Positions 39,701-48,421 of a stretch of 64,000 nt of DNA are shown here, piece after piece. Numbering within the stretch: position 1 is the stretch's first letter; every line of letters begins with the position of its first letter. The DNA comes from Trichosphaerium sp. ATCC 40318 (taxonomy: Eukaryota > Protista > Tubulinea). Below the pieces are notes generated by a model, which was given only the letters and a program-made list of their open reading frames with translations, did no database searches and was not told where the DNA came from. The translations under genes and the position numbers were made by a program. The stretch covers positions 186,001-250,000 of the forward strand of contig JALMLS010000062.1 of NCBI GenBank assembly GCA_038496445.1, given 5' to 3'.

Positions 39701-42700
39701 AAAACCATCTCCACAAGCACAATCAATACAACGCTCTTTACCGAGTTTGGCAAGCCTTGTTTTCGCTCTTTTCTTTTCTCCTGCCTCTCCCCAAATATAC
39801 AACTTGCCACTGTCTAGTCACTTTTAGCATACGCACAGAGGTAGTATCAAGTAATACGTACACATAAGAAGTAAAATATGCGTTTTACTGGTGTCAATTT
39901 TCTTGACTGTCATGAGCTTACTCATCCTGATACTGCTTGGAAGTCCGGCTATTCTTCGTGTATCTTTACTACTACTGGAAGGAGGACTTGTTGCTTCATC
40001 TGGTTCATACACAAATAAACTGCCTCTATCAAGTAAAAGTATAATAGCTTCACCGAATGTTGCTATCTGTTTTACATGTTGTGTATTAGGTAGTGTATTG
40101 GCTTTTAACTCTAATTTTTGAGGTATTAGAGCGCTATTCTCTAACTTCATAGGAAATGGAACATCTTCTCCCCATGCGTAAAAATGAGAAGGAGTTATAC
40201 TTGAGTCTTGTCAAGGACAAAAAGATTGGCTTGTAAAAAAAGTCACGTGAAAAGCACGGTGAACAAAAGTTGAGTTAATGGCAATGTTATGTCTTTTATA
40301 GAAGGATACGAGAGTGTGTATACCGTAGTAAAGTCCCAATAACCTCCACCTGTTTTAGCACCACCAAGGAAATATATAATATTATCGACAAAAGAAGCAG
40401 TGTGGTAGTATCTAAACATTACACGAATTTGGTAAGTGCTACAAATTATTATTGTGCTGTAACTCACCGAGGTGCTGGTATATTTCCCTATACATCACAT
40501 CAGGTAAAATTCTTAATTTACTATGACGTACTGCTACTTCAATTGACTCCCATGAGTTAGTGAAAGTGTTAAAGACATAAACGGCATTATCAAATTTTTC
40601 TTTTCTTTCATCGAAACCACCTTTGAAAAAGTTAACAAAAAAGAACTTGTACAATATACTATTCGCACCAAATACTACTATTCTTCCTCCTGGAATACCT
40701 GTAGCAGTATGTCGGTAAAGTGGTGGAGAAGACTTGGCCTGCAAATAACATTGTTTAGTAATGAAATAATTGGAGGTGCGTCTCTTTTTACCGGTAGCTT
40801 TTCCCATGAATACAAAAACTCTACAACAGTTGTTTAGTTCATACTTTTACAATATTATATGTACCTTGCGTAATGCCTAGATGATAGCCTACACCTCTTC
40901 CAAGGTGGCCAACTGATTGCTTAACTGTGGGGTAACCTATCAATCCTACATATTCGATAGATAAGGGTCCCTTAACAAGTCAATAAGATGAGATTACAAC
41001 TCCGTGAGTACCTCATTCTCGAATGGCAGTATCTGAATTACAAGTTCTTTACATATCATAGGTTCCGGTAGTTCTATTTCTACCTATTTGCAAAGGGAGA
41101 CGCGAGCGTAAGTAAAAACTACTGGTTGTAAACTATTTTTGGAATAGAAGGCGTACTTCATTGAAATCGCCTGTAAACTCTGCAAATGCCACGTGCTCTC
41201 CAGGTTGCCCCATTAACTCGCCAATAATATATCTGGACATACAATTAATACATGGTTTTGTTTAAAAACCTTGACGTACGATCGTGGAGCAGATGGCTCA
41301 ATCACAGTTGCACTATTCGCAGTTTGCTAGTATTAAAAAATGTAAAAAAATAAGAACAGATAAAATATCAAGTCTACCTCTGAATCATATATGAGTATAC
41401 CTCGACATGTTGTTGATGTACGTCTTGCTACAAGATGTGTAATAGTAACCAAACCTTAAATTGATATATAAGTATCCAAATAAGGCAATTATGTTGGTGA
41501 CTCGTACTGGAGCTTGTCAAAACGACGCTTATTCTTTTTGAAGAAACTGACGATAACAAGAATACTTTCTTTTCATCTTTATCCAAAAAATGATTTGCAT
41601 GCGCTATGGTACCATCGCTAACTTTTGATACAGAAAAGGGAAGGATTTCTAAATCTTTAGGCATTGTATGCTTTCCTAAAGCCGGAAACTTAGTACAAAA
41701 TGAAGAAAAAAGTTGTCGTGCCTGTGTCAAGAGCATATACATCAGGCAGACAATGGTCACCGTCACGGCCACCCATAAAATACAACGTTTTACCATCAGC
41801 AACGCACGTATGTGCACTGACTTCTACAGCGTCAAAAGGCACTTTTATAGTCTCCCATTCGTTGGTTTCTATTGAAATTAAACAGCTTTTTGTGGAAGAA
41901 TAAAAAAAAAAGAGCTTACCGAAAGTATACGCGTGGATTGTCTTCGATAGCCCAGTATCACCACAATAACCACCCTGTAACCACATTCTATCATTAGATA
42001 TAGCGCACGCGTGGCTAATTATGCATTAATTCTAGCGAGAAACGAAATTGAATCCGTTTTTTTTAAATACATTAGTTTCGCTAGTTTCTAACAATACTAA
42101 AATTAGTGATTGTTCTTACCTGTTACGGGCGCTAATATCATCTCCTTTATACGAAACCTCTTCCCAAGTTCTCTTATCTGGAGAAAATTTCCACATGTCG
42201 TTGTACCTTTTGGGTTTTTTTAATCACGTGACTATCAATTCAGTGCGAAAGAGGCTAAAAAAGCACGTACCTTATTTCTTTTCTGCCTTGTCCTCCAAAT
42301 ACGTATAAATTTCCTTCATAAGCAACCATTGACATAACACCGCGCGCATTAGGTTCAGGAGAATTACGCTAACCGTTTCATAAGCGATTTCATCCAAAAC
42401 AAAAACTCTCAGCATCGAATTTATACTTTTGATAAAAAAACAACTTACAGCTTTTGTTATTTTCTCCCATACGAGCTTTTCTATACGTTTATCAATATAT
42501 GTGGTTGTATACACCTTATTTTAAAGCGCTTTATTTTACTTACTTGTATCTAACACGTGCAGCTCATTCACATAGCGACCTTTGGTGCCATAACCGCCAA
42601 AAACATATATTTTACTACCAATCACTGCGCTAGCGTGATAGGCCTTGGGGAATGGTGGATTTCCCTGCGCTGACCTTTCCTGCCAGTCTAGGCGCGTAAC

Positions 42701-42706
42701 AGACAT
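36779..42706 (-). CDS. Multidomain protein: Kelch repeats - RCC1 repeats - PARP-like ADP-ribosyltransferase domain - coiled coil
   Basis: Kelch (HASAVIGSKIYVFGG), RCC1 (LYSWGRSDSGALGQGD), ART motifs IHGT / GWYGKGMYFT / TEVVLFDESQIVP; exons join in frame. Confidence 0.75.
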
Positions 42707-43420
42707 ACCAGGAGAATATTTTCGTTGATGAAATTTAGAAAACGTGCGACAAAAAAATCTCAGCTTTTTTTCTCTCTTCAAAAAAAAAGATAACAATAGT
42801 GGGAGACCTTCCAGCGATCTTTCGAGAAATTAAACAATAATTTTTTCGCACAAGGACGAGAATTCTTGAATGTTTTTCGTGTACAATAGCTAGTTTATTG
42901 CTAAAGTTGGTACGCACGTACAGAAGAGAAAATGAGGGTATTATTTGTTTTAATTCAATCAATACATTCTCAAAAACTGCACTGCAACTTTTTTATTTTC
43001 CATTCTTCGTACTTACATGTAGTTGAATGTCAAAGGGTGAAAAAGACACTCGTTTGTCTACGTTAAGAAGATAAACATGAAACTAGACAATAATACTAGT
43101 ACCAATCGCGTACATTTTATCAACTGTACCATAAAGAAGTTTGTAATTTTTATTCAAAACTCTTTTTCAAAAATGTGAAAAAAACGGCCGTCCTTCTAGA
43201 AGACATCTTTCGTTCGTTTGACTCAATGCTGGGCTTCTTATTGCGCGTACATTTTTGTATACAGCGAAGTATCGGGTGGTTACTTTAGTGGAGTTACAAA
43301 AACTCGCTTTATAGTTGTCCAAATCATCTCTCTTAACTATGATCGTGACACCTTCCACATAGACCACAAAAAAAATAGAACACATACGAATTGGGAAGCT
43401 TACGGACGAAATGTCCGAAA

Positions 43421-46400
43421 ATGTCACTAAAACACAAAACAGAACAAAACAAGCAACGCCTTACCGTTTGATACTTTCATTTCATGTTAGGTACACTACT
43501 TAGTACATTCTTGAAGTTCATATAAACTAGTTTTGTAGCAATTTGTAGCTTAAACGTAAAACCATCGTTTTAAAACCTAATAATATGTGTAGTATCATTA
43601 CAGGCGTTATTATACCGCGGTTTCGCGTTACTTCTCGTATTCGTTATCGCGACTTGTTACGGTGCTTCAAATGCTAGCCCTGAGTTTGTATACTCTTGTG
43701 ACGCTACATCTGACAACTGGGGATGTAATCCAAACGACTGGGCCAAAGATTCCGACGGCAACGCTGATCGCTTGGATTGCAAGACAAGCCCAGAGCCAAT
43801 AATGAGTTGGGCTTCTAAAGTAGTACCTACGTCAAACTACAAGGTATTTGCTGGCTTAGAAGACGAACCACAAACTCAATACGTACCTGGTGAAATCCTT
43901 GACATCACTGTTCTTGTTACAAAGTATAGTGCAAAGTACAGAGGGATCTTGATGTACGTAATTGTCTGCTTCTTTCTTTTGATTTTTTTTGTTTTTTTTT
44001 TTACAGTTTTTCACTCTTCGTTTTGAACGCTCTTCTGCAAATACCTCTTGATTTTTTTTTGTCTAATTTTGAATCTAGATATGCCGAAAGAGAGAACGGT
44101 ACACATGTTGGTCAATGGAAACTACCTGACGAATTTCCACGTGCGTTTTCTTATTTTTCTTTTTTTTTTTTTGGTTTTTTGTTTTTATCAATCTTTTTTT
44201 GTGTACGTTTTCTCTGATCTTGGGGTTTTGTGAATTACCTCAATGAATCTTTCTGTAATAACGCTCGATGTTTACATTTTTTCTTTAGCTCTTTTCCAAT
44301 TACCTTGGGGTGATAACAACGGTGTTTGCGCAAAGACTTTGATGCACACCAATGCTATTTTGAAACCTCTTTCAGTAACACTCAAGTTTATCGCACCTGC
44401 AAAGGGCACTGGTAAAATATATTTCCGTACACTCATCAAGAGTGGTGGTGCCAATACTGGTGCTTTCTGGTGGCCAAACAATGGTAACGAGTTTTCCTTG
44501 AGCGAATCCTCAGAATCTCTTCCAACAAACCATGGATGGTTTCAAACAAAGGTATACCTTTACTTACACGTTCTCCATACTCACTCTCGTGTTTAGCTTG
44601 GTCAATCATGTACTGAACGTTGTAATGAGGAAAGTCTTCTTTGCGATACAGTGTCACTACAAAGTATATCTGGTGTTTCAAAGATAAACTCGGAACTCAA
44701 GTCCGCCGGATTTATTTGCAGAAAACCTTATGTGAGCTCATGCAATGCTATCGGCGCAACGCAGAGTGTTGAAGGTAATTGCTATTTTGACGACACAAGA
44801 TGTGCCGCACAAGGACGTGATGAGGAACATGTTGCATGCGATTCCAAGAGCTCGAACGAAGAAAATGGGTACGGCTACTTTTTCTTTTACTATCCAGAAT
44901 TTTGAATTGACTGTTTTTTCCAGACTCCGCTTTTGCAGATGTTTGGAGTCCACTCTAGCACCTATGGTTATAGACAATACTACTGTATCAGAACCTGGGT
45001 CCTCAGTTAATCCATCAGACGGCATCAATCCATCATCAAGACCAACTGCTTCTTTCTTCATGATTGCTATGTGCATTTTGAGCGCTGCTTTCTTCAACAA
45101 AGGCCGCGCTACAACCTCAATGCTAATTGGCCTTTTCCTTGTCGCCTTGGTGGTATTACCATCGGCCAGCGCACACAACTGGATGAACAGTCCTACAAGA
45201 TCAGGATTCGCAAGTACTGAAATTCCATGCCCTCCGAAAGTTCAAACTGGACCACATGTTCAACTTGGTCCAAACCAGGTGTTCCAAGTCGAATGGGCTT
45301 CGGGTCACGGAGGTATTTCGTACTATGCTATTGTTAAGAAGGACAACGAAGAAAAACTGAAACTTCACAACAAAGCACTCTTCAATAAGTACTTTGCAGA
45401 AGCACCACCTGACGCTATATCTACCCTCACGGTTTACCACAGACGTAGCAACGCAAATCAACATGGAGCTGAATTACTTGCAGATGAGATTAAGCCTAAC
45501 ACTACTGATTACATTGAGAGACCATCTGTTTTCAGAGGTAGCCAATGGAGTTGGCAAGATAACACTAAAAAGCTTTTTGGATATAAACCTGAGTTCCATA
45601 AAGACAACTTCGCTTCATACGACAATCCTGATATACCTTGGATGATTGCACTATTCAAATCTCCTCATTACAGTCACAGGCCATCTGATGCTGATGTAGT
45701 ACAACTACCAATACCTGGACGTGCTGGTGCTGGTCAATATATCGTACACTGGTACTGGGGCGGATACCGTGATTGTATTGATGTAGATTATGTTACCGAA
45801 CCAGTTGATAATATCTATGGTTCACCAAGGACGCAAACAACTTACACGTGCGTATTTCTTTTGTCACGTGACCGAAATCTCTCCAACATTTGTTGGGTTC
45901 ATTTTTTTTTGTTTATCGTGTATTGATATCTTTTTCTAGACGTGTTGATCATTGTTACTTTCCGGACTGGAGAGAAGTGAGGCGTACGTTTTTATCATAT
46001 TTTATTGCCATAGTTTCTGACACTTTCTTGTTTTAGATTGCTCTGGTGTTTACACTGATGTTGACTACTGCGCTAAAGCATGCGAACAATTTTACTTTTG
46101 TGAAGGTATCACTGTCGCCCCTCTATCCGTTGCATTGGATACAGGCAGATACCCTGGAGCGAAGATTCTAGACGATGCATGCGTAGCAAGATTCGATGTA
46201 GAAAAACTAAAAGCAGAAGGAAAGGATCCTGAGGACATTATGGTATGTATGGCTGTTCGATCACGTGGAGAAAACCAAATCCGAGGTGACTACGAAGTTG
46301 TATACCCAGGTGACCCTGCTTACAAATCCACGTGTTATATCCGAAACAGTCACAGCCCTATCTTCCCAAATTTTCCCGAACCAACACACACGGAGATTCC

Positions 46401-46683
46401 TTGGAAACACGGTGAACAATGCATTGACTGTCACAGTGTTAGAGAAAACAGAAACATTACTGTATTCCCTAAATGGAAACTAACAGATGACTGCATCAAC
46501 TGTAACCTCGAACCGGATACAGCGCCATTGACTAGAAGACCTGTTCTCACCAATAAAGAAGATAAAACAAGATGCAACGGTGTTGCAGGAGGATGGGAAG
46601 GATCCAAAGGACATTCTTGCAACGGAACAGATGCAGAAGTTACAGCGCTGTGTAGTAAACAGTTCTTCAAACGCAGGGTTTGA
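43421..46683 (+). CDS. Reeler-domain protein continuing through a TM segment and internal signal peptide into an LPMO-like His1 domain; 3' end interrupted
   Basis: Signal peptide; Reeler motifs (YVPGEILDITV, YRGILMYA, GQW, APAKGTGKIYF); ...LVVLPSASA|HNWMNSPTRS...WASGHGG...YIVHWYWGGYRDCIDV; start approximate. Confidence 0.75.
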
Positions 46684-48421
46684 GAATCTGACTAACCTCG
46701 AGAATTTAGAACTTGCTTATTGTCGTACAATTTCAAATGGTTGCTTGTTACACCTGACTTCTCTCAAAAAACTTGAAGCTCATCATAGCGGGGTAACACA
46801 AGATGCAGCTAAGGCACTGGATAAATAAATCTGGTTGAGTAAAACAGTCCGTAATAGTTGTACATTGAGATGTTAAAATACATCAAGTCAATATCTCCAT
46901 CCAATGGAACCACAAATACTTCTACTTCTTCTAAAACCAGTTGTAAGTAAACAACAGCTATTATATTTTCTACAGACAAACCATACCTATTTTTTTAAAG
47001 TGAATGAACTAAGTAGATTTATTGCTGTACAAGATATAACAATGACATAATGCGTAACAAAAGTGAATCTGCACTTGTTATTATTGCAGGTTGGTTAAAG
47101 ATGGAGCTGTTTGGCGCCTGAAGCGATGAATGTACAAAGTAGCTTTGCGTAGACATGTGCTATATGGGCGTTTCGTTACTATCGACACTATTTTTATTGT
47201 TAAACAAATCTGGTCTACTATTTGTGTTTTTTAAAGCGATAAATGCATTACAAGTACTAACTACTTATCTCATGATGGAATTGAAAAACAATTAAAGTCT
47301 AAAACCAACAACGCTAGTAATGCATTTGTTATTACATAACCTGGTGTTCTTCACTCTCCTCCCAAATGAGAGGCTTGTCTATTGTGTTTAAAGTTGGTCT
47401 GTCACGTGTACCTTTTCATTGAGTATCCTTGCTTGCACAGGGTTCAACACCATTACTTCTTCATCTTGTAGGGAAGGCTAACAGAGTGGTGTACATACAA
47501 TAATATTTATGGTTGCTTCCTTATTTCTATAAAAGGAATAAAGGCTCTAAAAGATGTACATAACATTACACTCAGTGATCCAAAAGATTCATGGCTCAAA
47601 CATCTTGGGAATGCACACTGTTTGCATTTTAATGGAAAGCGAATGACAGATGATGGACTCAAATCATTGATCAATGTCAAACGCTTGGATTTGTACTTAT
47701 GTTCCAAGATAACAAACGCAGGGTTTGAGAATCTGACTAACCTCGAGCATTTAGAGCTTGCTTATTGTCGTACAATTTCAAATGATTGCTTGTTACACCT
47801 GACTTCTCTCAAGAAACTTGAAGCTCATCATAGCGGGGTAACACAAGATGCAGCTAAGGCACTGGATAAATAAATCTCTGTGTGAGTAAAACAGTCCGTA
47901 TTAGTTGTACATTGAGATGTTAACATACATCAAGTCAATATCTCCATCCAATGGAACCACAAATACTTCTACTTCTTCTAAAACCAGTTGTAAGTAAACA
48001 ACAGCTATTATATTATCTACAGACAAACCATACCTATTTTTTTAAAGTGAATGAACTAAGTAGATTTATTGCTGTTAATCATTCTTGAAAACAAGATCAT
48101 AACAATGACATAATGCGTAGCAAAAGTGAATCTGCACTTGTTATTATTGCAGGTTGGTTAAAGATGGAGCTGTTTGGCGCCTGAAGCGATGACTGTACAA
48201 TGTAGCTTTGCGTAGACATGTGCTATATGGGCGTTTCGTAAACTATCGACACTATACTATTTGTGGTTTTAAAGCGATAAATGCATTACAAGACTAACTA
48301 CTTATCTCACAAAGGTAAACATCACAGCAAAGAGAGATGGAATTGTGCAAAACACTTTCCTATTTTAGGTCTAGAACCAACGACGCTATTGTAATGCTAT
48401 TTGTTTATTACATAAACTGGT
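46668..48421 (+). repeat. Direct duplication (~46668-47344 and ~47713-48421) of an LRR gene 3' end plus downstream DNA
   Basis: Two highly similar ~0.7-kb units with small indels, both starting CAAACGCAGGGTTTGAG. Confidence 0.9.
47480..47873 (+). pseudogene. Intronless leucine-rich-repeat gene fragment
   Basis: LINVKRLDLYLCSKITNAGFENLTNLEHLELAYCRTISNDCL; frameshift near 47500 and no clear start. Confidence 0.65.

Follow-up and report, generated by a model that had tools for sequence, protein, structure and literature searches.

The locus and its gene

The stretch of DNA analysed here, hereafter the window, comprises 64,000 nucleotides of the genome of the protist Trichosphaerium sp. ATCC 40318 (contig JALMLS010000062.1, positions 186,001 to 250,000 of the forward strand), and is eukaryotic in character: its G+C content is about 37% and its introns measure 45-148 nt. 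On its plus strand lies a gene whose product would carry an N-terminal signal peptide, a Reeler-like domain, a Cys-rich module, two hydrophobic segments separated by a short basic loop, a domain resembling the lytic polysaccharide monooxygenases (LPMOs), called here the HNW domain, and a long Cys-rich region (Table 1). The arrangement around the two hydrophobic segments points to a secretory precursor that is probably cut internally by signal peptidase, so as to separate a Reeler protein from another one starting at the first histidine of the HNW domain.

Table 1. Exons, introns and protein features of the Reeler-HNW gene, in window coordinates
Feature	Position	Strand	Evidence
Exon 1, end, with start codon ATG (43484)	43484..43490	+	RNA contig joint 43490/43593
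Intron 1	43491-43592	+	GT..AG, RNA joint
Exon 2: remainder of signal peptide, Cys-containing lead-in, first half of Reeler-like domain	43593..43953	+	Both flanking introns are RNA joints
Intron 2	43954-44078	+	RNA joint
Exon 3: middle of Reeler-like domain	44079..44140	+	Joint 43953/44079 from RNA
Intron 3	44141-44288	+	Inferred; donor GT 44141 from the frame and a contig beginning at 44289
Exon 4: second half of Reeler-like domain (MHTNA...KGTGKIYFRTLIK...)	44289..44551	+	Alignment to homologue P0014
Intron 4	44552-44596	+	Inferred
Exon 5: Cys-rich module resembling the C-terminal domain of GnT-V (MGAT5)	44597..44868	+	Profile match
Intron 5	44869-44923	+	RNA joint
Exon 6, start: RFCRC motif and Ser/Pro/Thr-rich linker (...VSEPGSSVNPSDGINPSSRPT)	44924..45047	+	RNA contig over 44923-45017
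Exon 6, whole: stop-free single frame from linker through hairpin to HNW domain	44924-45847	+	Sequence
Hydrophobic segment 1 (ASFFMIAMCILSAAFF), predicted stop-transfer helix	45048..45095	+	Read from sequence
Basic loop NKGR, predicted to lie on the cytosolic side	45096..45107	+	Sequence
Hydrophobic segment 2 (ATTSMLIGLFLVALVVLPSASA), like an internal signal peptide, ending A-S-A; predicted cut after 45173	45108..45173	+	Sequence
LPMO-like HNW domain, 225 aa, starting HNWMNSPTRS; H1 45174, H45 45306, Y198 45765	45174..45847	+	Conservation and AF2 model
Intron 6	45848-45939	+	RNA joint 45847/45940
Exon 7: conserved RVDHCYFP motif after the domain	45940..45983	+	Joint 45847/45940 from RNA
Intron 7	45984-46036	+	Loose end of an RNA contig beginning at 46037
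Exon 8: Cys-rich C-terminal region, up to the limit of RNA agreement	46037..46667	+	RNA contig over 46148-46638
Junction with duplicated segment; frame closes at TGA (46681-46683)	46668..46683	+	RNA versus assembly

In the assembly the coding exons total 2577 nt, or 859 codons, and His1 of the HNW domain is codon 406. The frame opened by the ATG at 43484 begins with a signal peptide of ordinary type (M-L-V-S-L-Q-A-L-L-Y-R-G-F-A-L-L-L-V-F-V-I-A-T-C-Y-G-A-S-N-A). The RNA evidence for the locus consists of assembled contigs of one public run, recognized as RNA because its contigs skip GT..AG introns; coverage is low and fragmentary, and the contigs show splicing on either side of exon 6 (from exon 5 at 44868/44924, and onwards to exon 7). 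The donor sites at 43954, 44141, 44869, 45848 and 45984 have GTACG or GTGCG, with T-rich tracts preceding the AG. Throughout, single exons served as queries for searches and folding.

An earlier note, made on these letters before any search, had described the two hydrophobic segments, the spacer NKGR, the A-S-A ending, the start HNWMNSPTRS and the codons of His 45174, His 45306 and Tyr 45765, and all of these are found at the positions it gave. It had also placed the Reeler and Cys-rich half in the same exon as the junction. The open frame, the linker and the hairpin do share exon 6; the Reeler-like domain is spread over exons 2-4 (43593-44551) and the Cys-rich module occupies exon 5, of which only RFCRC reaches into exon 6.

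The junction in the Trichosphaerium paralogues

The interval 45048-45173 shows the sequence features expected of a polyprotein processed by signal peptidase, namely a stop-transfer segment, a positive loop, a short h-region, a helix breaker and small residues at -3 and -1. The layout looks as if a surface protein ending in a hydrophobic tail were joined, head to tail, to a secreted protein complete with signal peptide. A reading of segment 1 as a glycosylphosphatidylinositol (GPI) signal, suggested by its small residues, spacer and short hydrophobic tail, was also considered; the internal position is not canonical for such a signal.

At least 49 copies of the HNW domain were found in the 70-Mb genome, nearly all of them matching from query residue 1, the histidine. 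Forty-seven loci were taken for inspection of the junction, and a usable upstream frame was available for 44. In every one of these 44, the first hydrophobic segment (median length 17 residues) is followed by a loop that is 3-12 residues long and carries a net charge of +1 or +2, and then by a second segment whose end, small-x-small, immediately precedes HNW; the raw frame is open across the junction throughout. The residue at -1 is A in 26, G in 17 and C in one, and that at -3 is A in 14, T in 14, I in seven, V in seven and S in two; a proline stands at -4 to -7 in 37/44. With the junction recurring in 44 paralogues and in 95 foreign clusters, and with the three residues singled out by the earlier note falling on invariant or nearly invariant columns of a 97-sequence alignment, the pattern is far beyond chance. 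A fusion of two genes by gene-model error could be ruled out as well, given that no gene model was used and that in 44 copies the open frame is that of the raw sequence.

For 46/49 HNW copies a Reeler-like exon is found on the same strand, at a distance of 784-2158 bp upstream; exon 4 has 48 copies in the genome, and the CxC motif with its linker is conserved both in the paralogues and in the relatives from other organisms. Of the 44 paralogues, 24 carry a methionine within the loop or where segment 2 begins, and the other 20 have none there, so that an independent start codon is not general.

Relatives in other protists

An exhaustive HMMER search returned 424 related cluster representatives at E <= 0.001, the best of them 43% identical. 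Among the named sources are the amoebae Flabellula baltica and Rhizamoeba saxonica, MMETSP0437, the chlorarachniophyte Lotharella globosa, whose relative bears the UniProt name 'Uncharacterized protein', and the acantharian Phyllostaurus siculus. Among the 136 clusters that include the start of the domain, 131 have the HNW start; the domain follows directly upon an N-terminal signal peptide in 41 and is internal in 95, starting there anywhere from residue 49 to residue 921.

At the 95 internal sites the residue at -1 is A (78), G (11) or S (6), and that at -3 is A (40), V (26), T (10), S (8), C (7) or G (4). These residues are the same in kind as those at the N-terminal signal peptides of the 41 relatives, and segment 2 shows n-, h- and c-regions, in agreement with the signal-peptide-like character first noticed in the window. 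The layout proposed for the homologues is likewise kept, in about 44 of the 47 inspected paralogues and in 95 of the 136 foreign clusters. The single reading frame continues across the junction in this copy, in 44 paralogues and in some 95 foreign clusters; several relatives are known from contigs of about 3 kb, of Trinity or metatranscriptome origin, in which the entire precursor of about 1000 aa stands in a single open reading frame (ORF).

Among 150 listed relatives, 73 share the upstream Reeler-like exon, 39 are matched by exon 2 and 53 share exon 8, the downstream Cys-rich region; the motif W-x-R-I-D-H-C-x-F-P, of the exon 7 type, is seen in full-length relatives. Beyond the HNW domain, most of the full-length relatives lack any hydrophobic segment, for which reason the C-terminal product would be soluble unless held. 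In a quick unrooted tree the HNW copies of this genome form one clade, and internal and N-terminal forms are interspersed, with at least seven changes forced; the tree has no root, so which form came first cannot be read from it, and some of the 'N-terminal' rows may be truncated models.

Conservation and predicted fold of the HNW domain

In an alignment of 97 sequences H1, R9, H45 and Y73 are invariant, and N2, W3, W195, G197, Y198, D200 and D203 are at least 90% conserved; H45 is also invariant in a second alignment of 70 sequences (A3). The histidines and the tyrosine singled out by the earlier note are thus conserved, H1 and H45 without exception and Y198 nearly so. The tyrosine lies within W-x-G-Y-x-D-C-x-D-V, on the C-terminal strand of the model (E198-206).

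With the 97-sequence alignment, AlphaFold2 (AF2) gave a beta-sandwich with a predicted local distance difference test score (pLDDT) of 93.3 and a predicted template modelling score (pTM) of 0.90; run with no alignment it gave a useless model (pLDDT 31). The former model was compared exhaustively with 48,161 PDB representatives, and a repeat comparison agreed. The top match was LaX325 (Z 8.0, 123-126 residues aligned), followed by the AA15 LPMO of Thermobia (Z 7.3, root-mean-square deviation 2.5, 115 aligned), with AA10, AA9, AA11, AA13 and AA16 at Z 5-6, or 5.4-6.0 in the first comparison. By our count 11 of the 20 top chains are LPMO or LPMO-like, from eight families (X325, AA15, AA10, AA9, AA11, AA13, AA16 and the unassigned LPMO 6ndq), and in every one of these alignments residue 1 of the model falls on the N-terminal His of the chain. 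Of the fold foreseen in the earlier note, the beta-sandwich is thus present in the model.

In the ESM Atlas, the best relevant rows by shape were fungal 'lytic polysaccharide monooxygenase' clusters, with template modelling (TM) scores of 0.43-0.46 that are not decisive; by features, LPMO_10 and BIM1-like clusters appeared at 0.80-0.89, which serves as a lead only. A Pfam scan of the HNW domain was without a match, its 97 members gave LPMO_10 in 0/97 and AA9 in 2/97 (weak), and PF03067 and PF20238 (BIM1-like) matched none of the HNW copies in the genome, PF20238 being without a match anywhere in it. A profile of the domain run against PDB sequences returned noise only (HopA1, E 0.8), and a word-indexed protein search with the domain found nothing, probably owing to its length window and the low identity. 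Taken with the model, these results support HNW as an LPMO-like domain family absent from Pfam, as the earlier note had supposed when it spoke of an unclassified family.

Weak LPMO_10 matches do occur elsewhere, at G000:C163:23656-23922 (minus strand, 22.2 bits, or 27.5 with neighbouring matches) and at G000:C7:776223-776501 (plus strand, 15.4 bits). Judging by these matches, both may represent ordinary LPMO genes that have nothing to do with the HNW family.

The upstream and downstream modules

A family profile (A2) built from 32 N-terminal ectodomains matches the reeler domain of F-spondin (2zou, E 7e-5). One homologue, P0014, passes the Pfam Reeler model (PF02014) with 24.2 bits against a cut-off of 21, and exons 2 and 4 align to its Reeler region at E 5e-12 and 4e-19, respectively. 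PF02014 itself found no match in the window exons scanned singly or in the six-frame genome. The Reeler assignment of the first inspection thus finds support in the family profile and in one homologue above the Pfam cut-off.

Positions 202-301 of the same profile match the C-terminal domain of human GnT-V/MGAT5 (6yjq and other chains) at E 7e-6; Pfam Glyco_transf_18 matches to the Cys-rich module are weak and under the cut-off. To our knowledge this C-terminal domain does not occur outside the context of that glycosyltransferase. A prediction of a complex between the N-terminal ectodomain of the relative P0001 and its own HNW domain scored 0.00, which amounts to no answer and speaks neither for nor against binding.

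Downstream of the HNW domain, a Pfam scan of the Cys-rich region of exon 8 was without a match; its nearest neighbours by language-model features are PAN/Apple clusters (0.83-0.85, a lead only).

The 3' end and neighbouring sequence

The RNA contig and the assembly part ways at 46667/46668, and the frame of the assembly stops five codons further on. From this point the interval 46668-47176 (about 510 bp) duplicates 47713-48239 at 97-98% identity, the duplicated segment comprising the 3' end of a leucine-rich-repeat gene and the sequence downstream of that gene. The RNA runs on in frame past 46667, yet the sequence that follows there occurs nowhere in the window or elsewhere in the genome assembly. 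The 3' end of this copy is therefore either a truncation by duplication, that is, a structural variant, or a misassembly; the junction and the HNW domain are untouched by it.

The source copy of the duplicated 3' end is a leucine-rich-repeat open frame (...NLTNLEHLELAYCRTISNDCLLHLTSLKKLEAHHSGVTQDAAKALDK) at 47560-47873 on the plus strand. Upstream of the gene, at 39824-42800, a series of minus-strand open frames look like the exons of a Kelch-repeat gene (GGRIVVFGANS, LYFMGGRDGDH, IYVFGGYGTKGRYVNELHVLD).

Proposed processing and its alternatives

The reading that we favour, at a probability of roughly 0.6, is that one gene and one mRNA encode a secretory precursor, and that an internal cut yields a Reeler protein and a His1 protein with a histidine brace. 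The N-terminal signal peptide would deliver both the Reeler domain and the module resembling the GnT-V C-terminal domain to the lumen of the endoplasmic reticulum, hydrophobic segment 1 would halt the transfer, and the 4-residue basic loop would remain cytosolic. Segment 2 would then restart translocation as an internal signal peptide, and signal peptidase would cut after A-S-A (45173|45174), leaving a membrane-held Reeler protein and a His-first protein consisting of the HNW beta-sandwich domain followed by Cys-rich modules. In the latter, a copper histidine brace could form from the new alpha-amino group and the imidazole of His1 together with the invariant His45, with Tyr198 nearby, as in LPMOs and X325/Bim1. 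What the data show directly is the reading frame, the splicing on either side of exon 6, the conservation of the junction and of the key residues, and the similarity of fold; cleavage, topology, copper binding and the function of the HNW protein are all matters that we infer. Release of the HNW protein from the membrane would be plausible, given that a further membrane segment downstream of the domain is lacking in most full-length relatives.

The strongest argument for cleavage is that the same His is necessarily the mature N-terminus in 41 relatives, and that the internal sites keep the signal-peptidase features. The argument bears directly on the unlikely case of an uncleaved double-pass membrane protein, a permanent hairpin displaying the Reeler part and the HNW domain outside, in which the His would be internal and no N-terminal brace would form. 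Two hydrophobic segments with a short basic loop do make a normal helical hairpin, and the cleavage is a prediction from sequence. Nevertheless, a mere anchor needs none of what the junctions display, namely a small residue at -1 in 100% of cases, an allowed residue at -3, a short h-region and a proline at -4 to -7; nor does an anchor account for relatives in which the domain begins at the same His right after an ordinary N-terminal signal peptide. It is very unlikely that the HNW protein comes from its own transcript or from internal initiation at Met 45120 (...TTSMLIGLF...), with the open frame incidental. This copy has the Met, as do 24/44 paralogues within the loop or where segment 2 begins, and RNA contigs leave the junction at the locus uncrossed; but 20/44 paralogues and many foreign relatives do without a Met while the frame is open in all, initiation at 45120 would give no charged n-region, and the assembled transcripts of relatives hold both halves in one ORF.

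Several observations weigh against the internally cut precursor with its His-brace product, and they should be set down together. The stretch 45018-45731 is without an RNA contig at the locus, and the junction itself is unseen in RNA there. The 3' end is disrupted in the assembly, which means that this locus may be damaged or misassembled. Z scores of 5-8 are in a range common for models that have no clear match, and Foldseek against the PDB gave no match at E <= 0.001, the best being about 5e-3, with several LPMOs among the weak rows. The HNW domain, moreover, matches no LPMO Pfam model and no PDB chain sequence. Because the Z scores are moderate and the Foldseek result is weak, the fold evidence rests on the enrichment of LPMOs among the top matches and on the register of the alignments, and not on any single score.

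If the precursor is cut internally as we favour, the question arises of what the His-first protein does. For the HNW domain the likeliest chemistry is the binding of copper by a histidine brace. It is possible that the product is a non-enzymatic protein for copper binding or uptake, like X325/Bim1, or a binding module, and no polysaccharide oxidase at all: LaX325 is the best structural match (Z 8.0), and X325 proteins hold copper in a histidine brace without polysaccharide activity, while Bim1 serves copper uptake (PMC7924993). The fold thus leaves the activity unsettled, since X325 has the brace without polysaccharide oxidation. Against a pure copper-handling role, some 49 diversified copies and long Cys-rich C-terminal modules would suit substrate diversity better, an argument that is only suggestive. 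These diversified copies and the attached binding-type modules incline us to an enzyme that oxidizes a glycan, either from prey or from the organism's own wall. A still bolder version, in which the signal-peptidase cut creates the catalytic His1 of an active new LPMO family of phagotrophic protists and the Reeler fragment, made 1:1, stays on as a tether, a substrate-binding or an electron-supplying partner at the cell or phagosome surface, is in our opinion doubtful.

Comparison with known systems

Pipelines for LPMO discovery and domain-architecture rules presume that the domain comes first in its precursor, and in every LPMO or histidine-brace family known to us this is indeed its place. In the HNW family, by contrast, with its 424 clusters and about 49 copies in this genome, the domain may stand hundreds of residues into the precursor. 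If the proposal is true, it adds a new LPMO-like family outside Pfam, and searches limited to N-terminal domains overlook such proteins. The full-text literature that we searched yielded no paper tying LPMO or histidine-brace proteins to an internal signal peptide, a polyprotein, a Reeler domain or amoebae, and the pairing of a Reeler domain, a GnT-V-C-terminal-like module, a hairpin and an LPMO-like domain was not found there.

The individual parts, on the other hand, have recognizable counterparts. The N-terminal half resembles Reeler-domain proteins (F-spondin, the N-terminus of reelin, insect Noduler, FRRS1) through its profile match to the F-spondin reeler. The LPMO families AA15, AA10, AA9, AA11, AA13 and AA16 share with HNW a beta-sandwich (Z 5-7.3), two invariant His and a conserved Tyr on the C-terminal strand, whereas the LPMO Pfam models fail on HNW; the HNW start, H-x-(Y/W)-x-x-S-P-x-(S)-R, presumably recalls the N-terminus of AA10. 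In X325 proteins (LaX325, Bim1), as predicted for HNW, cleavage of a signal peptide exposes an N-terminal His, and another His follows early in the chain, but they show no detectable sequence relation to it, and they are of about 150 aa and first in the precursor, whereas HNW has 225 aa and is usually internal, behind a Reeler protein and a hairpin.

For the precursor as a whole the closest parallel comes from enveloped viruses. The polyproteins of flavivirus prM/E, hepatitis C virus (HCV) core-E1-E2 and bunyavirus Gn/Gc are envelope polyproteins cut by host signal peptidase. In these viruses, as proposed here for the HNW precursor, two ectodomain proteins arise from one chain by way of a transmembrane segment, a short loop in the cytosol and an internal signal sequence that ends in a signal-peptidase site, and the family would then be a rare cellular counterpart of these processed viral polyproteins. 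Unlike them, it is a cellular gene family of protists, and the proposed cut would not merely separate two proteins but also make a metal-binding N-terminus.

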